64,000 nucleotides of DNA from Podarcis bocagei (GCA_964188305.1 OZ076888.1); one strand, 5' to 3'. Positions 41,236-49,821 are shown, counted from the first letter of the stretch. A program made the numbers and translations. Notes: a model not told the origin generated them from the letters alone.

Positions 41236-42791
41236 TCTCTTAGATAACAAGGTCAGAGATAGCTCAGTTAAGACAGGACTACAGGCAGCGACCATTTCGC
41301 ACCAGGGTTCTGTTCCCAACCCCTGCATGCATCGGCAGAGCATCTCATTACACCACACCCCCATTCTGCTTTCTTCCGGGTCCAAAAGGACCTGCACATC
41401 AACAATAACACATCAGCTGGATACACCTAAAACCGTAACTGCCAACAGAGAGCCTCTGGAGAAAAGCAGCATATTTAATATCATATCTTACCCGCATCTC
41501 CCTCCAGGTGGCATTCGTATTCTCATATTGTAAATAGGAATTTGTGTCGGAAAGGGTGAACTTTCCTAGTGAGTTCATGGCAAGGCATTTTTGAACCAGG
41601 AACTCCCTAGTTCACACACAGTTCATCATTTCACCACACCTGTTCCATTTTCTGCTTACCAACAAATATACCTGGTTGCAATAAGCCCTTAAAGTATGCA
41701 ATATTCATGCTGCCCTGCTCTGCAGCAAGTAGCTGAACTCTCCATAAGCTGCCAATTTTGAAGGCTGCCACCCTACATTTAAAATCCACATAACCCCACC
41801 ACGATGCCAGACCTTCAAAGGACCTGCTGAAATGTGCCTATTTTCATCTGTCAGTGTTCAGAGGGCACGAGTGTCTTCACAAAGCAAGATCTGGATGTTA
41901 GAGCCCTATTTTCTTTCTATATATTCTGAGGCAATAAAAAAAAAAAATGTTTGGAGGAAATAAGGAAGTCATTAGCGCAATCGATTTCCAAGAACGCCTC
42001 TAAAATGGGCCTGAAGATGTTCCCCAGCAGAACCCTTTTTCAGCTGACAGATGGTAGAATCATTTCATCAGGCTGTTCCAACACTCAGCTCATATGACAG
42101 GCAGCAGGGTGCGGTCAGGTTGCTGCACTTTGAATGGTGATTATGCAATGCTGCTTTGCATCTTAGCATGAGAAGACACGTGAGCCATCTATGAGCAGTT
42201 ACCCCCATGCTACAAGTGTAGAGCTTCCACAGCTATCCAGTGTTGCTACCTGAATCCTCTCACACAACTAACCACACCATGTCCACACCACACCTGGTTA
42301 CAGTTTACAGTTTGACAACTGCTGTTTATTGCAACAATAATCCACAGCCTCAGCCTTTTTCACTTGTTCCCTTCCCACATCTCTGTTTTATAAAATGTTG
42401 GCCAGTTGTCCCCCTTCAGATGTTAAGATTATGTGCGCTCCAGGGGTCAGAACTTTCCTTTACTTACATGTACTGTATATCTTGGGTCTAGCACCCAAGA
42501 GTCTTGAACCTGACAGCAATGCAGCTTTTAGGTGCTACTATATTCCACAGAAACAATAAAGTGCTACTTGGAAAGATGGAAAACTCATTTTGCTTTCGCC
42601 TTGAACCCACTTGGGGGTTCAAAAGTTCGACTGAAGCTCTGACAGAGACGGAAAGGAGTGATGAAGAGACAAAGAAAAAATAACTAGTAGAAAAGTGGGC
42701 TGTAAATGGAGGCTGACTGCAGGCAGAATGAAAAGAAGAAAGCCAACACAAAGGAACAGTGGAAACGAGAGGTGTCAAAATCCCAAATCCT

Positions 42792-43140
42792 GGCTTCCGG
42801 TCGGTGCCAGCGCTTAATGGCGGTCCTACCTCCGAGCTCCGGAGAAGGACTGCTTCGCAAGTTCGGGTCTTACCCGCTACGGCGAGCGGGGGACCCCTAA
42901 AATCCCAGGCGCTGAAGCCTGAGAACAAGGAGACTCGGTGGGCACCTTCGCGCCCCCCGGTACCGTGAAAGAGCCTTTTTAAAGGCTACGGATCGACATC
43001 GGGAGAGAGCGCGGTGCTGAGAGTCGCTACCCAGCCTGCGAAGTGAAGCCGCGTCGCCATAAGCGGAGAGCGCCGATTCCTTCCTGAAAAGAAAATTTGG
43101 ACTGAATTCCCGTGAGTAAGAGTTGGAAAACAACCGGGAC
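42792..43140 (+). promoter_or_regulatory. L1 internal promoter / CpG-rich 5'UTR head
   Basis: CpG-dense in an otherwise CpG-depleted window. ETS-type CTTCCGG at the 5' terminus and YY1-type AATGGCGG at 42816-42823, positioned much like the YY1 site of mammalian L1. Promoter function is inferred. Confidence 0.7.
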
Positions 43141-43750
43141 CCTTTAAATTTCAGAAATTGGGCTAAAAACGGGGGGATTTAAACAAAGGAAGTCTGCCTC
43201 CCCCCGACTGCATGAAAGTGAAAGCAACGGAACTCTAAACTTGCATCCGTTTAGACCTGCTCTTTGATCATATAAACCGGACATTTAGACCTTTGATCTC
43301 CCCTCTAGCAAGCAGGGCAGAGGGGAGGTGAATTTGATTAATAACTGCATGATTTATTTGGAGGAAAAAACCTCTGCTATCTCATCTATTTGAAAGTTTG
43401 AAACGGACTGCCTTTTTAGTACACTGAGCAGACTTTTCCCTGTGAAGTGACATCTTGATACAAAGTTTCCACAGTGCCTGACTTTTGTATATTATAAGAA
43501 GAAACAGTATAAACAGTATACTGGGCAACTGTGGCAATTGGAAGTTATAAGACTTTAGCAACATTGACTTTGACTGTGTTAATCTCCTTTCTTTTTACAT
43601 CTTGGACTGTCTCCTTTGTTCTTGTATTTGGAAACTTCTTTCTATGGCCATTTTGATTTGCTCCCTCTAGAGGATAAAGTAAAGTCCGGCACGGCCTAAG
43701 ACAGTGGAATTTTCCAAGGGAGAATAAATCCCGTGGGAACTGACCTTGAC

Positions 43751-44782
43751 ATGAGTGGACCACAAGAAGAGATAGTTACAAGAGCCAAGATCAAGCAACA
43801 ACAACAACAGCAACAGTTGCAGCTGCAACAAGCAAAGAAAAGAGGCTCAATCTCAGGCACAACAGCCGGATTAGCTGGAACAACAGGACAAGACAAAGGA
43901 GCAGCCGTTTCTATGGAAGCTGTGACAGAAGCCTTGCTTAAGATAAACCAGACTCTGGAGTCTCTGACAAATCAGACTTCAGAGAACACACAAAAATTAA
44001 CAGAAATATCAACAAGATTAAACCAGAATACAGAATCTATAAACAAACTGGTCGAGGAAAACGCTACCACGCGTCAAATTGCCGAAGAGGCCAAAGCCAC
44101 TGCTGGAGAGACGCAGGAGAAATTAGAGCCACTTGCCAAGAAGGTCTATGAGCATGATGCAACTTTGGCCTTGTGGGAGTTACAGAGGAAAGAGAGAAAC
44201 TTAAAATTAAGACTGATTCCGGAGAATGAAAGAGACAACCTTGTGGAATATTTGACACGGGAGTTTGCGGATTGCTGGGACCTTGAGGAAGACGAATTCA
44301 AAATCACAACTGCCTTTAGACTGGGTAAAAAGCAAGATAGAAAGACACCGAGAGATTGTCTGATCACACTCAGATCTAAGGAGGAAAGAGATAAAATTTT
44401 AGGACTACACTTTGAAAAGGCCTTGCAAATTGGAAACTCAGCTGTACAGATCTTCAAAGACATACCAAAATACATTTTGGATTTAAGAAACTTCTACAAG
44501 GACTTGGTTCTTTTGTTAAAGAAAAATTCTATCCGCTTCAGGTGGGAGTTCCCACAAGGACTGTCATTCGACTACAAGGCAAAGAAAGTGAAAATAAAGA
44601 CAATTCAAGATAAAGACAAATTTTTGGCAAGATACCAGGAGGACTTACAGAAGGGGACTGTGGACGTACTTGCAGAACAGAGGAGAGCACTGGATATCCT
44701 GAATCTCTCGTTTGGACAAAAACCACCACCATCAGAAGAAGAGCAACAACTTGGAGCTGTTGGAGGAGCCCTAAGAAAATAA
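43751..44782 (+). CDS. L1 ORF1p (343 aa from the first ATG; coiled coil plus RRM/CTD-like RNA-binding region)
   Basis: Lies directly upstream of ORF2 inside the TSD-bounded element. Heptad-rich segment followed by RKERNLKLRLIPE (L1 ORF1 R-x-x-N-x-R/K-x-x-x-x-PE-like motif) and FRWEFPQGL. The ORF-track start at 43733 is a GTG. Confidence 0.9.
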   Translation: MSGPQEEIVTRAKIKQQQQQQQLQLQQAKKRGSISGTTAGLAGTTGQDKGAAVSMEAVTEALLKINQTLESLTNQTSENTQKLTEISTRLNQNTESINKLVEENATTRQIAEEAKATAGETQEKLEPLAKKVYEHDATLALWELQRKERNLKLRLIPENERDNLVEYLTREFADCWDLEEDEFKITTAFRLGKKQDRKTPRDCLITLRSKEERDKILGLHFEKALQIGNSAVQIFKDIPKYILDLRNFYKDLVLLLKKNSIRFRWEFPQGLSFDYKAKKVKIKTIQDKDKFLARYQEDLQKGTVDVLAEQRRALDILNLSFGQKPPPSEEEQQLGAVGGALRK

Positions 44783-44786
44783 CAAG

Positions 44787-47700
44787 ATGGCTTTGCAATT
44801 CCTTAGTTGGAATTGTAATGGACTGAATGGGCCTTTGAAGAGAAGACAAGTATTTCATATTTTGAACAGAGAACAACTGGACTTGATATGTTTACAAGAA
44901 ACTCACATAACCAGAGCCCACAGGAGATTACTCACAAATAAAAGGCTAGGACAAGAATTTATTTCATCAGACAAAGTTAAGAAGAGAGGAGTGGTAATAT
45001 ATGTGAAGGAGAAATGGGCTCCAAAAATGATATTCAAAGATGAACAAGGGAGATATCTGGCTGTGGAGATACAAGTACAAGGAGAAAAATTTTTAGTTGT
45101 TGGAATCTATGCACCAAATGAAGGCAAATCTGACTTCTTTAAGAGACTTCATGAAACTTTGATGGACTATCTGGATTACAATATGATAATCATGGGAGAC
45201 ATGAATGGCGTGGTCTCCACTAATATGGACAAGGCACAAAGACTAACAGTCACTAAAGAAGGGAGACTCCCTAAGACTTTTTTCGAAATGACAGAAAACA
45301 TGGACTTGATAGACATTTGGAGAACAAGGAACCCTCTGGAGAGAGAGGGAACCTTTTTCTCCCAAGCAATGATGACCTGGACCAGAATTGACCAAATCTG
45401 GGTTACTAGTGGACTGGCTCCAAAGATTAAGAAAGTGGAAATCTGCCCAAAAACTTGCTCCGACCATAACGCCGTGAAGATGGAGATGAAACCCACAATA
45501 ACTGGTCAATTTAGATGGAGAATGAATGACACCCTCTTTCGAGATAAGGAGATTCTCACGAAGGCCCAAAAGACCTTAAAAGACTATTTTGAAATAAATT
45601 TGAGGACCGACGTGGAGAAAAGAGTGATCTGGGACGCAAGTAAAGCGGTTATGAGAGGATTTTTGATTCAACAAAATTCAATAAAGAGGAAAAAACAAAA
45701 TGAGAAAAAAGAGAAGATCTTGGAAATGATAAAGGAAGGAGAGAGGAAATTAAGAACAAAACCAAAGTCTCAGGACATTTTAAGAGAGATCAAGTTATAT
45801 CAAACTCAATATATGGAATTGATGAACCAAGAGATTGAATGGAAGATAAAGCAAATGAAGCAAAAGACTTTTGAATCAGCAAATAAATGTGGCAAACTTT
45901 TGGCATGGCAATTGAAGAAAAGGCAGAAACTAAATACAGTTACAAGCCTAGAGGTGGATGGAAAGAACATATCTAAACCCAATGAAATTAGAAATTGCTT
46001 TTTAAGTTACTTCAAAAAACTCTACACCCAAGGCCCGCAAAATGAAGAAGATATAGACAAATTCCTTGGAAGATATGGATTACAAAATATCTCTCAGCAA
46101 AGTAAGATGGACTTGAACCAGAGAATCTCAGAACAAGAGATAGAGGCTGCCATTCAGAATATGCAACTGGGCAAATCTCCGGGACCAGATGGACTGACTT
46201 CTAGATACTACAAATCGCTGAAGGAATGGCTGATTCAACCACTAAGAGAAGTTTGTAATGAGATTCTTGAGGGAAAAAGGGCACCTGAATCGTGGAAAGA
46301 GGCATATATTTCACTCATACCAAAGTCAGAGACTGAAAAGACCCAACTCAAGAACTACCGCCCAATATCACTCCTTAATGTGGATTACAAAATTTTTGCA
46401 GACATTTTGGCAAAAAGATTTAAAAGAGTTTTGATGGAGAAGATTCATAAAGACCAAGCAGGCTTTCTCCCTAAAAGACACCTAGCAGACAATGTAAGGA
46501 ATGTAATAGACATCTTGGAAAAGCTGGAGGTGAATATAAACACTAAAGCAGTATTGATCTTTGTGGATGCGGAGAAAGCCTTTGATAACATCTCTTGGAG
46601 TTTTATGAGGAAGAATCTTCATGGGATGGGGGTAGGCCAGGGTTTTGAGAATGGTATGGCTGCAATATATTCTGAACAAAAAGCTAAACTGATTGTAAAT
46701 AATGTTGTGACTGAGGAACTTAAGATAGAAAAAGGAACACGACAGGGGTGCCCAATTTCCCCATTACTTTTTATTTCGGTTCTGGAGGTGTTGCTGAATA
46801 TGATAAGAAATGACCAGCAGGTCAAAGGTGTGCAGGTCGGAGCTAAACATTATAAGTTAAGAGCGTATGCAGATGACCTAGTATTGACTTTGCAAGAGCC
46901 AAACACTAGTACGAAAAGGGTCTTAGAAATAATACAACAATTTGGTCAGGTAGCTGGATTTAAGTTGAATAAGCAAAAAACTAAAGTTTTAGGGAAAAAC
47001 CTAACAGATATGGAAAAGGAGAAATTTCAGGAGGAAACAGGTTTGACAGTGGTCAAGAAGGTGAAATACCTAGGGGTTTATTTAACACCTAAGAATGTCA
47101 ATTTGTATAAGGACAATTATGAAAAATGTTGGTCAGAGATTAAAAAAGATTTAGAAATATGGTCAAATCTGAAACTGTCAATGTTAGGCCGAATTGCAGT
47201 AATTAAAATGAATGTATTGCCTAGAATGTTATTTTTGTTTCAGACCTTGCAGATTCTTGACAAGATGGAATGTTTCAAGAGGTGGCACAAAGACATTTCG
47301 AAATTTGTCTGGCAGGGCAAAAAGCCCCGAATTAAATTCAAAATACTGACTGACGCTAAAGAAAGAGGGGGTTTTGCCCTGCCGGACCTAAAATTGTACT
47401 ATGAGGCAGCAGCTTTTTGCTGGCTGAAAGAATGGATGCTCCTCGAGAACACGGACATCTTGGATCTGGAAGGTTTTAATAATGCTTTTGGTTGGCATGC
47501 ATATCTTTGGTATGACAAAGTTAACAGTACTTTTAAAAATCACATTGTTAGAAAAGCATTATTTAATGTCTGGATAAGATATAAAGACCTATTGGAAAAT
47601 AAAACCCCTAGATGGGTGTCACCAGTGGAGGCTAAAGCAGTGAAGAAACTCAATATGGAGGTCGGATGGCCGAAGTATTGGGAAATCTTAGAACAGGATG

Positions 47701-48518
47701 GAGACAAGTTTAAACTACAAAGTCAGGAGAAATTGAAGCACAAAGTAGAAAATTGGTTTCAATATCGCCAAATAATGGAATTTTTTAAACAGGATAGGAA
47801 AATCGGTTTCCAGGTGGAGAAATCAAAACTAGAGACCGAACTGTTAGAACCCAATACTAAGAATTTATCTAGAATGTATAACTTGCTGTTGAAATGGAAC
47901 ACACAGGATGAAACAGTTAAATCGGCTATGATTAAGTGGGCGCAGGATGTTGGACACAACATTATGTCAGATGACTGGGAATGGTTATGGAACACCGGTA
48001 TCAAATTTACGGCATGTAATGCCTTAAAGGAAAACATTATGAAAATGGTTTACAGGTGGTACATGACCCCAGTCAAACTGGCAAAAATCTACCATTTGCC
48101 CGATAATAAATGTTGGAAGTGTAAAGAGACTGAAGGTACTTTCTATCACCTTTGGTGGACATGCCCGAAGATAAAGGCCTTCTGGGAAATGATCTATAAT
48201 GAAATGAAAAAGGTACTTAAATGTACATTTCCTAAAAAACCAGAGGCCTTTCTCTTGGGCATTGTCGGCCAATTGGTGACAAAGAAAGATAGAAATTTCT
48301 TTATGTATGCCACAACAGCAGCAAGAATACTCATCGCAAAGTATTGGAAGACACAAGATTTACCTACTCTGGAAGAATGGCAGATGAAAGTGATGGACTA
48401 TATGACAATGGCTGAGATGACAGGCAGAATCCGTGACCAACGCAAAGAGACGGTGGAAGAAGAATGGAAAAAATTTAAAAGCTATCTTAAGGACTACTAT
48501 AAACTGAATGAATGTTAA
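44787..48518 (+). CDS. L1 ORF2p (1243 aa): APE-type endonuclease, reverse transcriptase and C-terminal CCHC zinc knuckle
   Basis: EN motifs SWNCNG, LQETH, YAPN, GDMN, SDHN. RT motifs KSPGPDG, NYRPISLLNVDYK, DAEKAFD, GTRQGCPISP, YADD, KYLG. Knuckle CWKC-x8-HLWWTC. Confidence 0.97.
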   Translation: MALQFLSWNCNGLNGPLKRRQVFHILNREQLDLICLQETHITRAHRRLLTNKRLGQEFISSDKVKKRGVVIYVKEKWAPKMIFKDEQGRYLAVEIQVQGEKFLVVGIYAPNEGKSDFFKRLHETLMDYLDYNMIIMGDMNGVVSTNMDKAQRLTVTKEGRLPKTFFEMTENMDLIDIWRTRNPLEREGTFFSQAMMTWTRIDQIWVTSGLAPKIKKVEICPKTCSDHNAVKMEMKPTITGQFRWRMNDTLFRDKEILTKAQKTLKDYFEINLRTDVEKRVIWDASKAVMRGFLIQQNSIKRKKQNEKKEKILEMIKEGERKLRTKPKSQDILREIKLYQTQYMELMNQEIEWKIKQMKQKTFESANKCGKLLAWQLKKRQKLNTVTSLEVDGKNISKPNEIRNCFLSYFKKLYTQGPQNEEDIDKFLGRYGLQNISQQSKMDLNQRISEQEIEAAIQNMQLGKSPGPDGLTSRYYKSLKEWLIQPLREVCNEILEGKRAPESWKEAYISLIPKSETEKTQLKNYRPISLLNVDYKIFADILAKRFKRVLMEKIHKDQAGFLPKRHLADNVRNVIDILEKLEVNINTKAVLIFVDAEKAFDNISWSFMRKNLHGMGVGQGFENGMAAIYSEQKAKLIVNNVVTEELKIEKGTRQGCPISPLLFISVLEVLLNMIRNDQQVKGVQVGAKHYKLRAYADDLVLTLQEPNTSTKRVLEIIQQFGQVAGFKLNKQKTKVLGKNLTDMEKEKFQEETGLTVVKKVKYLGVYLTPKNVNLYKDNYEKCWSEIKKDLEIWSNLKLSMLGRIAVIKMNVLPRMLFLFQTLQILDKMECFKRWHKDISKFVWQGKKPRIKFKILTDAKERGGFALPDLKLYYEAAAFCWLKEWMLLENTDILDLEGFNNAFGWHAYLWYDKVNSTFKNHIVRKALFNVWIRYKDLLENKTPRWVSPVEAKAVKKLNMEVGWPKYWEILEQDGDKFKLQSQEKLKHKVENWFQYRQIMEFFKQDRKIGFQVEKSKLETELLEPNTKNLSRMYNLLLKWNTQDETVKSAMIKWAQDVGHNIMSDDWEWLWNTGIKFTACNALKENIMKMVYRWYMTPVKLAKIYHLPDNKCWKCKETEGTFYHLWWTCPKIKAFWEMIYNEMKKVLKCTFPKKPEAFLLGIVGQLVTKKDRNFFMYATTAARILIAKYWKTQDLPTLEEWQMKVMDYMTMAEMTGRIRDQRKETVEEEWKKFKSYLKDYYKLNEC

Positions 48519-49821
48519 AATGTTGTGGTTGCCAGAAGCAATAGGGTACAAGGATACAAGGTTAGACAATAAAAGAGGACTAAGATGACAGAGATTAGAA
48601 AGTAACAATTGGGAGTTGCTAGTTCAAATTTGGACATTGGGATGCAGAGAGGGGGGGTATGGGGAAGTCCAAGAAAAGAGGTTTATGAAAATATCTTTGA
48701 AACTATTCTGTATGTTTGTCATTTTTTGTGTTTGTTTGTTTTTCTTAAAAATGTTGTAAAACCAATAAAAATTTATTTAAAAAAAAAACAAAATCCCAAA
48801 TCCTATAGTAAACAGTGAGAGGCTGGCAGCGCAAGCCTTCTTCTGGCAAAACAATCAAAATTATTTCAGTGGTTCCTTAGTTACAATGTGATATAGCAGA
48901 TACACACAGATACACTTAGCCTTTCCAGTGCAGGATTCATGGCCCAGCCATGAAGCTCAATGAATGGGTGAGAGCAAGTCACTTTTTAAAATTAGTATCC
49001 TTGGACAGAAAAGTAGAGCCTGTGAAAAAGGATGTCTGTTTGCAATGCCCACATATGCAATGCCTCTCTTTATTGTCAAATGCCAAATCAAAATACGCAT
49101 GGACAAAACAGTTGTCTGTGAATGATGTATTTTTCCACACCTCTGGCTTCAGATAGTTCCTGCTATATCCTGAAGGAAGGCTGTTAATAGAGATTTCATT
49201 TCAACTATTTCCTGCCCCCTTAGAATAGCCCATCTCTTTATTTTTATTTTTGACAAAGAACCCATTATTCGACATAGTATTTTGGATGGTTTGAAAACTC
49301 TTTCTTTCTAGCTTATCCACCCCACTTTTGTTTGAATACCCACTAGCTGAATACTTTTAAGTGTTCCAAGTGGGTCGTCGTCCCCCCCCCCCCCGGCTTA
49401 GGGAAGCTGTTTAGGACAGTTTATCTATCTGGCATCAGATTTCATTGGAACCATAGAGCCAAGTTACATGTTATATCAAACCCATTGTTTGGAGTTGTGT
49501 GGTTTATTTATTTTTAGAAAAGCTTTAAACAGCAACCATGGGAAGGGTGGGGAGCTGATGAGGATGTGGACGGTGGTGAGGGATGGAGGTATTGGTGAAA
49601 ACTGCCCCCTAAAGTTGCTTTTTATGTCAGGAGAGAAGCTTCTATCGGTATCCCTCCTTATCCAAACAGCAACTTTGGTAGGGGAAATTATTTTTGTTGC
49701 AACTGCAGAACTGACACACCCCAGTCCCAACCTGAGCAGTGCCCACCATAACTTCCTATTTGAAGTTTAAAAAATAAATACACACCAAACTACAGATTAA
49801 ATTTATAGCTTTTCCTGTAGC

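Follow-up and report, generated by a model that had tools for sequence, protein, structure and literature searches.

A conserved RNA fold at the 5′ end of Podarcis L1 retrotransposons that is probably superimposed on an internal promoter

A closed, branched RNA fold is predicted for the 5′-terminal 287 nt (positions 42792–43078, plus strand) of a full-length L1 retrotransposon. The element lies in a 64,000-nt stretch of DNA from Podarcis bocagei, which was analyzed as a whole and is referred to here as the window. We consider it rather likely that this segment is a lacertid L1 RNA leader domain within a dual-use module that serves as a promoter in the form of DNA and carries a selected fold in the form of RNA. 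Comparison of related elements argues that the plus-strand fold, which sits at the exact 5′ end of the L1, is under purifying selection in several lineages. Up to now this 5′ stretch has been interpreted solely as a promoter; it probably functions at the RNA level too, and the specific function that we assign to the fold is purely inferential. L1 5′UTRs are regarded as fast-evolving promoters devoid of conserved RNA architecture, and the literature searched contained no report of conserved RNA structure at the 5′ end of reptile L1s. Conservation of the 5′-end sequence is known; because it was published without a fold, both the fold and the covariation that goes with it seem to be novel.

The original prediction placed the structure at the 5′ end of an L1, and this is borne out by a target-site duplication, by two intact ORFs, and by sequencing depth (Table 1). 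In DNA runs from three related species, the summed contig depth rises from 16 to 150 in the flank to 4 × 10^4 to 3 × 10^5 in the bin 42782–42822. Since this bin holds position 42792, the jump confirms the L1 5′ boundary and shows that copies of the family are very numerous. The closest ORF2 proteins found in a protein search belong to Podarcis muralis L1s (94% identity), and the L1 copy is young and intact. The window is free of N runs, and similarity and covariance-model searches detected no second copy of the domain elsewhere in it. A pyrimidine-rich tract is found 3′ of the domain and forms the sequence context for a putative IRES or other cap-independent translation element.

Table 1. Positions of the L1 element, of the predicted RNA domain and its helices, and of nearby motifs in the window
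Feature	Position	Strand	Remarks
Target-site duplication, 5′ copy CAAAATCCCAAATCCT	42776–42791	+	Identical 16-mer at 48789–48804
5′-terminal heptamer GGCTTCC	42792–42798	+	No partner in the 287-nt fold; all six lineages start with ETS-like box G(G/A)CTTCCGG
Predicted structured RNA domain	42799–43078	+	280 nt, ~90 bp, three-way junction around a four-way junction; from MFE, RNAalifold, covariance model R1, pair counts, and structure-blind check
Basal stem, 5′ strand	42800–42822	+	Pairs with 43055–43077; holds invariant AATGGCGG (YY1-core-like, 42816–42823) and the only early AUG
Hairpin GUCCUACCUCCG / CGGAGAAGGAC	42823–42850	+	10 pairs; two-sided changes: 5 structure-blind, 3 model-fitted
Long-range stem, 5′ strand	42852–42863	+	Pairs with 43033–43044; 12 pairs, 6–7 changed on both sides
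Hairpin GGGUCUU/GGGACCC	42865–42896	+	Inner CGC/GCG; UNCG-type tetraloop, UACG or, in L005 and L009, UGCG
Hairpin UCCCAGGC / GCCUGAGA	42903–42924	+	8 pairs, 2 with two-sided changes
Long arm	42929–43028	+	GGAGACUC/GAGUCGCU, invariant GGCACC/GGUGCU, variable C-rich/G-rich middle, apical AGCCUU/AAGGCU
Unpaired junction GAAGCCGCGU	43045–43054	+	GAAGCCGC unchanged in every lineage, the most distant one included
Basal stem, 3′ strand	43055–43077	+	Holds CGCCAT, complement of the ATGGCG box
GTGAGTAAG, 5′ splice site-like	43112–43120	+	34 nt 3′ of the domain; all six lineages and L001 have GTGAGTA at +317 to +327
GGAAGTC, complement of the 5′ heptamer, in conserved block AAGGAAGTCNGCC	43188–43194	+	+391 to +404 in all six lineages
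ORF1, intact	43751–44782	+	343 aa from ATG; relatives are Podarcis L1 ORF1 proteins
ORF2, intact	44787–48518	+	1243 aa; domains Exo_endo_phos and RVT_1 (endonuclease, reverse transcriptase)
Target-site duplication, 3′ copy	48789–48804	+	Directly 3′ of poly(A); perfect 16 bp

Folding of the window copy (42792–43078, plus strand) with ViennaRNA gave an MFE of −132.1 kcal/mol, compared with −113.8 ± 5.7 kcal/mol for dinucleotide-shuffled sequences (z = −3.23). One of 200 shuffles was as stable as the native sequence, which means that the folding energy is better than expected by chance. For the 280-nt core alone (42799–43078), z was −4.6 (100 dinucleotide shuffles), and the minus strand of the 287-nt stretch folded with −127.7 kcal/mol (z = −2.25). 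Every helix of the nested, multibranched fold proposed originally was located at the coordinates given and was recovered in the ViennaRNA MFE structure. The further statement that the only early AUG, at 42817, sits in the basal stem is likewise correct, this being the sole ATG in the first 340 nt. The upstream ORF that starts at this AUG (+26) encodes 27, 27, 35, 35, 5, and 7 amino acids in the six lineages compared, and these varying lengths rule out a conserved coding upstream ORF. Since the length is not conserved, the AUG is taken to be kept as part of the box or the stem, not as a coding start.

The same domain is found at the 5′ terminus of five further Podarcis L1 copies, with ORF1 identities down to 50%. 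Loci of these relatives were taken from P. lilfordi and P. muralis by means of ORF1p and ORF2p searches. The comparison set comprises six sequences that represent five independent lineages of a single lizard genus. According to BLAST, the first ~300 to 440 nt are conserved in L003 and L004 at 77 to 83%, and L007 is 90% identical over 313 nt, though its ORFs are only 77% identical. A covariance model, R1, was built from a MAFFT core alignment of four copies and revealed the domain in two copies where BLAST was blind to it, namely L005 (5949–6226, 87 bits, E = 1e-22) and L009 (4064–4345, 161 bits, E = 2e-44), whose ORF1p is 50% identical to that of the window. These two copies were aligned by R1, which leans toward the structure. 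All six copies, which are full length or nearly so, have unrelated upstream flanks, and in each the domain begins 7 to 9 nt after the first base of the element; folding z-scores range from −4.4 to −7.2 across the six homologues.

As a specificity control, R1 was applied to GC-rich metagenome contigs (549 kb) in which two R1 motifs occur, and no match was obtained. These microbial contigs contain the pattern CTCGGNGGGCACC-N50-80-GCGGTGCTG, for which there are at least 120 chance matches, and R1 was run on the 80 listed loci. An R1 match in L006 (11838–12064, 26 bits) turned out to be an unrelated palindromic repeat and was discarded, and minus-strand matches were confined to the palindromic arm. 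Three Logan contigs with ORF1 or ORF2 relatives (L001, L002, and L010) end before the L1 5′ end, and of these only L001 keeps a part of the domain, its final 48 nt. Truncation at the 5′ end was found for L008 and for the L1 in L006. Exact look-up with the window ORF1p and with P0002 retrieved no contig. In L003, L004, L005, and L007, ORF1 is broken.

Relative to the rest of the element, the domain forms an island of conservation (Table 2). Identity to the window copy is 57 to 96% over +1 to +287, compared with 28 to 65% (mostly 38–60%) in the other parts of the 5′UTR and 47 to 70% in ORF1, which indicates that the domain is under stronger constraint than ORF1. By analogy with the R2 5′ RNA and retroviral leaders, such a profile could be that of a putative protein-docking leader, which would bind ORF1p, ORF2p, or a host factor, would hold the RNA's 5′ end in the integration complex or mark the RNA for packaging, and would in this way favor full-length copies. 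In line with this idea, the domain always occupies the extreme 5′ end of the element, neither the junction GAAGCCGC nor the helix GGCACC/GGUGCU varies, even in the most distant lineage, and read depth at the 5′ end is similar to that over ORF1. The invariant motifs, however, can be explained equally well as transcription factor sites, and we know of no requirement of L1 for 5′ RNA signals, which we count against docking as the main role. We regard it as possible but unlikely.

Table 2. Identity of related L1 copies to the window copy, by region
Region	L007	L003/L004	L009	L005
+1 to +287	89–96%	79–83%	65–75%	57–63%
+421 to +878	38–61%	38–60%	35–55%	28–57%
ORF1	60–70%	60–65%	52–63%	47–57%
ORF2	77–84%	80–88%	45–82%	72–80%

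The conserved segment also carries promoter-type signals. The elements open with G(G/A)CTTCCGG at +1 to +9, which is the reverse complement of the ETS-type motif CCGGAAGT, and motif matching places AATGGCGG, with its YY1-type core ATGGCG, at +24/+25 in the plus orientation in all six lineages. The first 300 nt contain 27 to 31 CpG dinucleotides, with an observed/expected ratio of 0.97 to 1.08 and a GC content of 61 to 63%. In the Anolis clade-1 L1 consensus, GACTTCCGGTG-N8-ATGGCG is found at the first bases, and zebrafish L1 starts with GGACTTCCGGTT; within lizard 5′UTRs, conservation is highest in the first ~120 bp, which has been interpreted as a shared promoter (Boissinot & Sookdeo 2016, PMC5381506). 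The window copy starts with GGCTTCCGGT, and its ETS-like and ATGGCG boxes are 15 nt apart, compared with N8 in Anolis; in Podarcis, this 15-nt spacer forms basal stem 1. The domain overlaps the known lizard L1 promoter boxes GACTTCCGG and ATGGCG. Because these boxes share the segment with the fold, DNA-level and RNA-level constraint would be superimposed, a point absent from the original prediction.

This overlap raises the question of whether a promoter alone could account for the data. If so, conservation would result from transcription factor sites and CpG composition, and the helices would be incidental to GC-rich, partly palindromic DNA. The invariance of the ETS-like and YY1-like boxes, the observed/expected CpG ratio of ~1.0, and the published interpretation of the lizard L1 5′ terminus as a promoter (PMC5381506) all fit such an explanation, as does the fact that the minus strand also beats shuffled sequences (z = −2.3 to −5.7). 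The pattern of substitutions within the helices, however, does not.

RNAalifold, applied to a MAFFT alignment of the four BLAST-alignable copies, yielded 92 pairs, seven of which were compensatory. In the model-based alignment of seven sequences, 95.5% of the pair cells were standard-paired and 21 pairs had changed on both sides, versus 9.9 ± 2.1 in shuffles (0 of 500 reached 21) and only 3 to 6 when the partners were slid by one to three columns. The covariation score was 0.209, compared with 0.127 for shuffled and 0.04 to 0.075 for slid controls. Because the model alignment leans toward the structure, the pairs were counted again after the six full sequences (identity down to 62%) had been aligned by MAFFT blind to structure. 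This gave 90 pairs, with 92.6% of the cells paired on the plus strand (84.0% on the minus strand), and 22 double-change pairs. The covariation sought among related L1 5′ ends is thus seen in the Podarcis copies, both by RNAalifold and in pair counts, the 21 to 22 pair-keeping double changes being about twice the shuffle mean and four to seven times the slid controls, statistics that are subject to the relatedness of the compared sequences. In the harshest test, in which the MFE structure of the window copy alone was imposed on the blind alignment, 33 of the 45 double changes preserved the pair; changed pairs survived in 50 to 67% of cases versus 38 to 46% for random partners. By the same count, many one-sided changes broke pairs (4 to 15 per lineage), especially in the two most distant lineages. 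Divergence is lower in paired than in unpaired columns in every lineage, which also argues against a promoter as the sole explanation.

Individual pairs illustrate these changes: depending on the lineage, 42813:43063 is C-G, U-A, or G-C; 42814:43062 is U-A, U-G, or C-G; 42857:43039 is G-C, G-U, or A-U; and 42824:42849 is U-A or A-U. In the long arm, the outer helix shows an A-U to G-C change among lineages, and the apical helix of L005 is CCCC/GGGG with a GUAA loop. Covariation gives good support to basal stem 2 and the first hairpin, to the long-range stem and the CAGGC hairpin, and, within the long arm, to its outer and apical parts. Basal stem 1 and GGCACC/GGUGCU are uninformative because they are invariant, and support for the C-rich/G-rich middle of the long arm, where 87 to 89% of the cells are paired, is weak. 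The invariant helices and loops may alternatively reflect conservation at the DNA level.

Two linked variants in the long-range stem are seen in sequencing reads as well. The changes 42855 U>C and 43041 A>G affect pairing partners, and few variants have better support in the reads and contigs of the four runs. In two DNA runs the two changes occur at matching frequencies (26 and 27%, 8 and 8%), in a third DNA run at 40 and 15%, respectively, and RNA reads from a fourth species carry them in 9 of 10 and 11 of 11 cases.

As to the strand that folds, the blind alignment contains 64 G-U cells and 18 A-C cells, an excess that duplex DNA sites cannot explain and that points to the plus-strand RNA as the folding molecule. 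The plus strand is also more stable than the minus strand by 4 to 21 kcal/mol in all six lineages. The UNCG tetraloop, kept as UACG or UGCG, and the GNRA loop (GUAA) of L005 are read here as hallmarks of RNA, unlike duplex DNA sites. Taken with the paired changes, these features make it improbable that the conserved segment is a promoter and nothing else. The prediction of a selected RNA domain is upheld by compensatory changes in at least five lineages, by the G-U excess on the plus strand, and by the lack of an Rfam match described later.

One pairing proposed originally did not withstand comparison. The putative pseudoknot between GGCUUC at the 5′ terminus and GAAGCC is present in the window copy but perfect only there and in L009. 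Elsewhere, base 2 is A and faces C, so that four of the six lineages have an A·C mismatch; GAAGCC is invariant, and no compensating change is seen. When a longer segment was folded (+1 to +409, 409 nt), bases 1 to 7 were found to form a nested pairing with GGAAGUC at 43188–43194, near +397. This outer helix fits all six lineages, as A and G at base 2 both pair with U, and it is part of the MFE structure in four to five of them.

The heptamer complement lies in a region with motifs that resemble splice signals. In all lineages, ACGGG near +375 is a possible pairing partner for CCCGU at the GTGAGTA junction, and in four copies a pyrimidine tract followed by TAG|AGG is found ~80 nt before the ORF1 ATG; the arrangement looks like exon 1, intron, and exon 2. 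The fold could thus serve in co-transcriptional or splicing control, bringing the cap near the conserved GUGAGUAAG at ~+320 and, with the outer pairing between bases 1 to 7 and ~+397 to 403, regulating U1 snRNP or a 5′UTR intron. The conserved GTGAGTA, the acceptor-like motif, the possible CCCGU/ACGGG pairing, and the frequent presence of the outer helix in MFE structures would agree with this. However, a spliced joint 43111|43671 was not seen in the RNA run, and no intron-less copies were seen in the three DNA runs. Moreover, the extra outer pairings are backed by one-sided changes only, and the motifs double as ETS-core sites in DNA. On balance, we find such a role hard to credit. The Gnomon model LOC144325741 of P. 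muralis was also considered as evidence on an L1 intron and rejected as uninformative, because it has host exons spliced into flanking DNA, not to an L1 acceptor.

HDV-like ribozymes free the RNAs of R2, RTE, and L1Tc elements from read-through transcripts, and the original prediction considered a ribozyme or a role in 5′-end processing for the present fold. Searches of the window, L003, and L005 against Rfam 15, at E-values up to 10, gave no credible match to HDV-type, hammerhead, twister, twister-sister, or other ribozymes, nor to the LINE-1 mini ribozyme, pistol, hatchet, hairpin, or VS models, and permissive thresholds produced inconsistent noise only. In this comparison, the domain belongs to no Rfam family, and it could not be matched to the HDV motif, as had been stated. 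A ribozyme function found no backing, since no known ribozyme family matches and the topology is unlike the HDV core: the P1-type helix GGCUUC/GAAGCC is imperfect in four of six lineages, and the adjoining "P3" would enclose a branched insert of ~170 nt, not a short loop. A hammerhead was rejected by eye because CUGAGAG at 43017 differs from the CUGANGA box. RNA run X38 has a depth of ~7 to 38 over 42782–43109 on both strands and, at this low coverage, neither a sharp start nor a pile-up of RNA ends at 42792. A self-cleaving ribozyme of a new class, cutting at or just upstream of +1 and freeing L1 RNA from read-through host transcripts, would fit the exact 5′-end position, the complex multihelix fold with its invariant junction nucleotides, the precedent of the dual promoter/ribozyme Pr77 of L1Tc (PMC3383444, PMC3185411), and the occurrence of a ribozyme in primate L1 5′UTRs (PMC11620745), but given the above results, and because an element with its own promoter boxes does not need such processing, we deem it very improbable.

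A broader proposal is that the domain belongs to a new class of large functional RNA in the L1 5′ end, either self-cleaving or a docking site for L1 proteins that secures full-length copying, and that this class is squamate-wide, perhaps going back to fish L1s that start with GGACTTCCGG. We are doubtful of this; if true, it would mean that a 5′ RNA signal is in use in non-mammalian L1s and was lost in mammals.

In the reading that we favor, a promoter as DNA combined with a selected fold as RNA, the module would span ~320 to 400 nt at the very start of the element. Its DNA layer would be an internal CpG-island promoter with the ETS-type box at +1 to +9 and the YY1-core AATGGCGG at +25 to +32. 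In its RNA layer, +8 to +287 would fold co-transcriptionally into a closed, branched domain, in which a 20-bp basal stem joins the ends and encloses one hairpin and a long-range stem bearing the four-way junction. Selection would maintain the fold itself, through compensatory substitutions, and the fold would act in cis on the L1 transcript, after transcription. The role that we would prefer is to compact a long GC- and CpG-rich leader and to bury its single upstream AUG, the cap-proximal bases being brought beside the downstream linker. Such a compact unit could control ribosome access and the stability of the 5′ end and might give L1 or host proteins a surface on which to dock; self-cleavage would not be among its activities. 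A translational role is not obvious, because a structure of −130 kcal/mol located 7 nt from the cap is expected to hinder cap-dependent initiation.

Several known systems resemble the module in part. The L1s of Anolis clade 1 and zebrafish (PMC5381506) share with it GACTTCCGG at the first bases, ATGGCG soon after, and CpG richness, and in both a long 5′UTR is best conserved over its first 100-plus bp, which are shared across deeply divergent, coexisting families; unlike here, the motifs were treated as promoter or transcription factor sites, and no RNA fold was reported. In Pr77/L1TcRz of the Trypanosoma cruzi element L1Tc (PMC3383444, PMC3185411), the first bases of a non-LTR element likewise act as a DNA promoter and form the folded 5′ end of the mRNA. 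That RNA is 77 nt long, HDV-like, and has been shown to cleave, whereas the lizard domain comprises 280 nt, has no similarity to HDV models, and is unlikely to cleave. The 5′ RNA of R2, consisting of an HDV-like ribozyme and a protein-binding region (PMC3774820), is similar in being a structured LINE 5′ RNA of ~300 nt with conserved structure and variable sequence. R2, however, is promoterless and cut from a 28S co-transcript, whereas the lizard L1 has an internal promoter, and there is no sequence or model similarity between the two. The twister-sister-like mini ribozyme of primate L1s (L1PA6–10, PMC11620745) differs in its length of 35 nt and its location elsewhere in the UTR, and has no Rfam match here.

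The human L1 5′UTR has in common with the lizard module an internal promoter, a YY1 box (+13 to +21, ATGGC core), a CpG island, and a GC-rich leader. Mammalian L1 5′UTRs turn over quickly, and to our knowledge no conserved multihelix fold has been described in them. Retroviral leaders (TAR, PBS, splice donor, packaging signal) also combine a multihelix leader with a splice donor-like site directly downstream, and the RNA concerned serves as template as well as messenger; there is no homology, and the corresponding L1 roles are hypothetical.

The conservation of the 5′ end of lizard and fish L1s has previously been attributed to shared transcription factors. A 280-nt fold that is kept by compensatory changes at 50% ORF1 identity points to an RNA function layered on the promoter. 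If present, this RNA-level function would help explain why these 5′UTRs escape the replacement seen in mammals. The stems, which can be broken and restored without touching the transcription factor boxes, constitute a target for work on the translation, stability, and recognition of L1 RNA, and R1 can be used for charting the element across reptile genomes.

The L1 5'UTR looks like a first exon, a poorly conserved intron of about 560 nt and a second exon, because of the positions of two splice site-like sequences listed in the table below. All six lineages compared (the window L1 and five Podarcis copies with an intact 5' terminus) carry GTGAGTA(A/G)G, which resembles a 5' splice site, at L1 coordinates +317 to +327, and so does L001, an L1-related contig keeping the last 48 nt of the RNA domain. 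TAG|AGG follows a pyrimidine tract in the window, L007, L009 and L001. No spliced joint of this putative intron was seen in X38, an RNA run of a related lizard species, and no L1 copies lacking it were seen in the DNA runs of three other species (X1, X2, and X6).

Sequence features outside the RNA domain of the window L1
Feature	Window coordinates	Strand	Remarks
GTGAGTA(A/G)G	43112-43120	+	5' splice site-like motif
Pyrimidine tract and TAG|AGG	43660-43670		about 80 nt upstream of ORF1 ATG
GGAAGTC	43188-43194	+	complement of 5'-terminal G(G/A)CTTCC
GGGGAAGTCC	48663-48670		near L1 3' end; equivalent places in L007 and L005

GGAAGTC, the complement of the 5'-terminal heptamer, is kept at +391 to +404 in 6/6 lineages, and GGGGAAGTCC is present about 120 to 130 nt upstream of the poly(A) in three of the six. 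Each may pair with the L1 5' end over a long range in the RNA, or may be an additional ETS-core site.

No Pfam match at E 1e-3 was obtained for the ORF1 protein (window 43751-44782). Close to the N-terminus of this protein lies a polyglutamine run, at which CAG/CAA length variants occur in RNA reads from a related species.

At the Podarcis muralis locus OZ076970.1 (L006), which holds a 5'-truncated L1, the annotated gene LOC144325741 (L006:6001-24754) has host exons spliced onto ORF1 of that element, using an acceptor in the flanking DNA immediately 5' of it. L006:11838-12184 was rejected as a copy of the RNA domain; it is a palindromic repeat, built on TTAAAATGCTGGGGGTCGG, which may be a small inverted-repeat element, and its weak matches to the RNA model, scoring 26 and 14 bits, are false.

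Within the long arm of the predicted fold, the window letter is in the minority at two loop or irregular positions: across four runs, the share of depth showing C>T at 42949 is 51-100%, and that showing A>T at 43006 is 73-95%. L007 carries the majority letters at the matching positions. Across the first 313 nt, L007:6054-6367 and window 42792-43104 are 90% identical, versus 77-84% identity for ORF2 and 60-70% for ORF1. Such similarity of the 5' ends would reflect either far stronger constraint there or a 5' module swapped between lineages.
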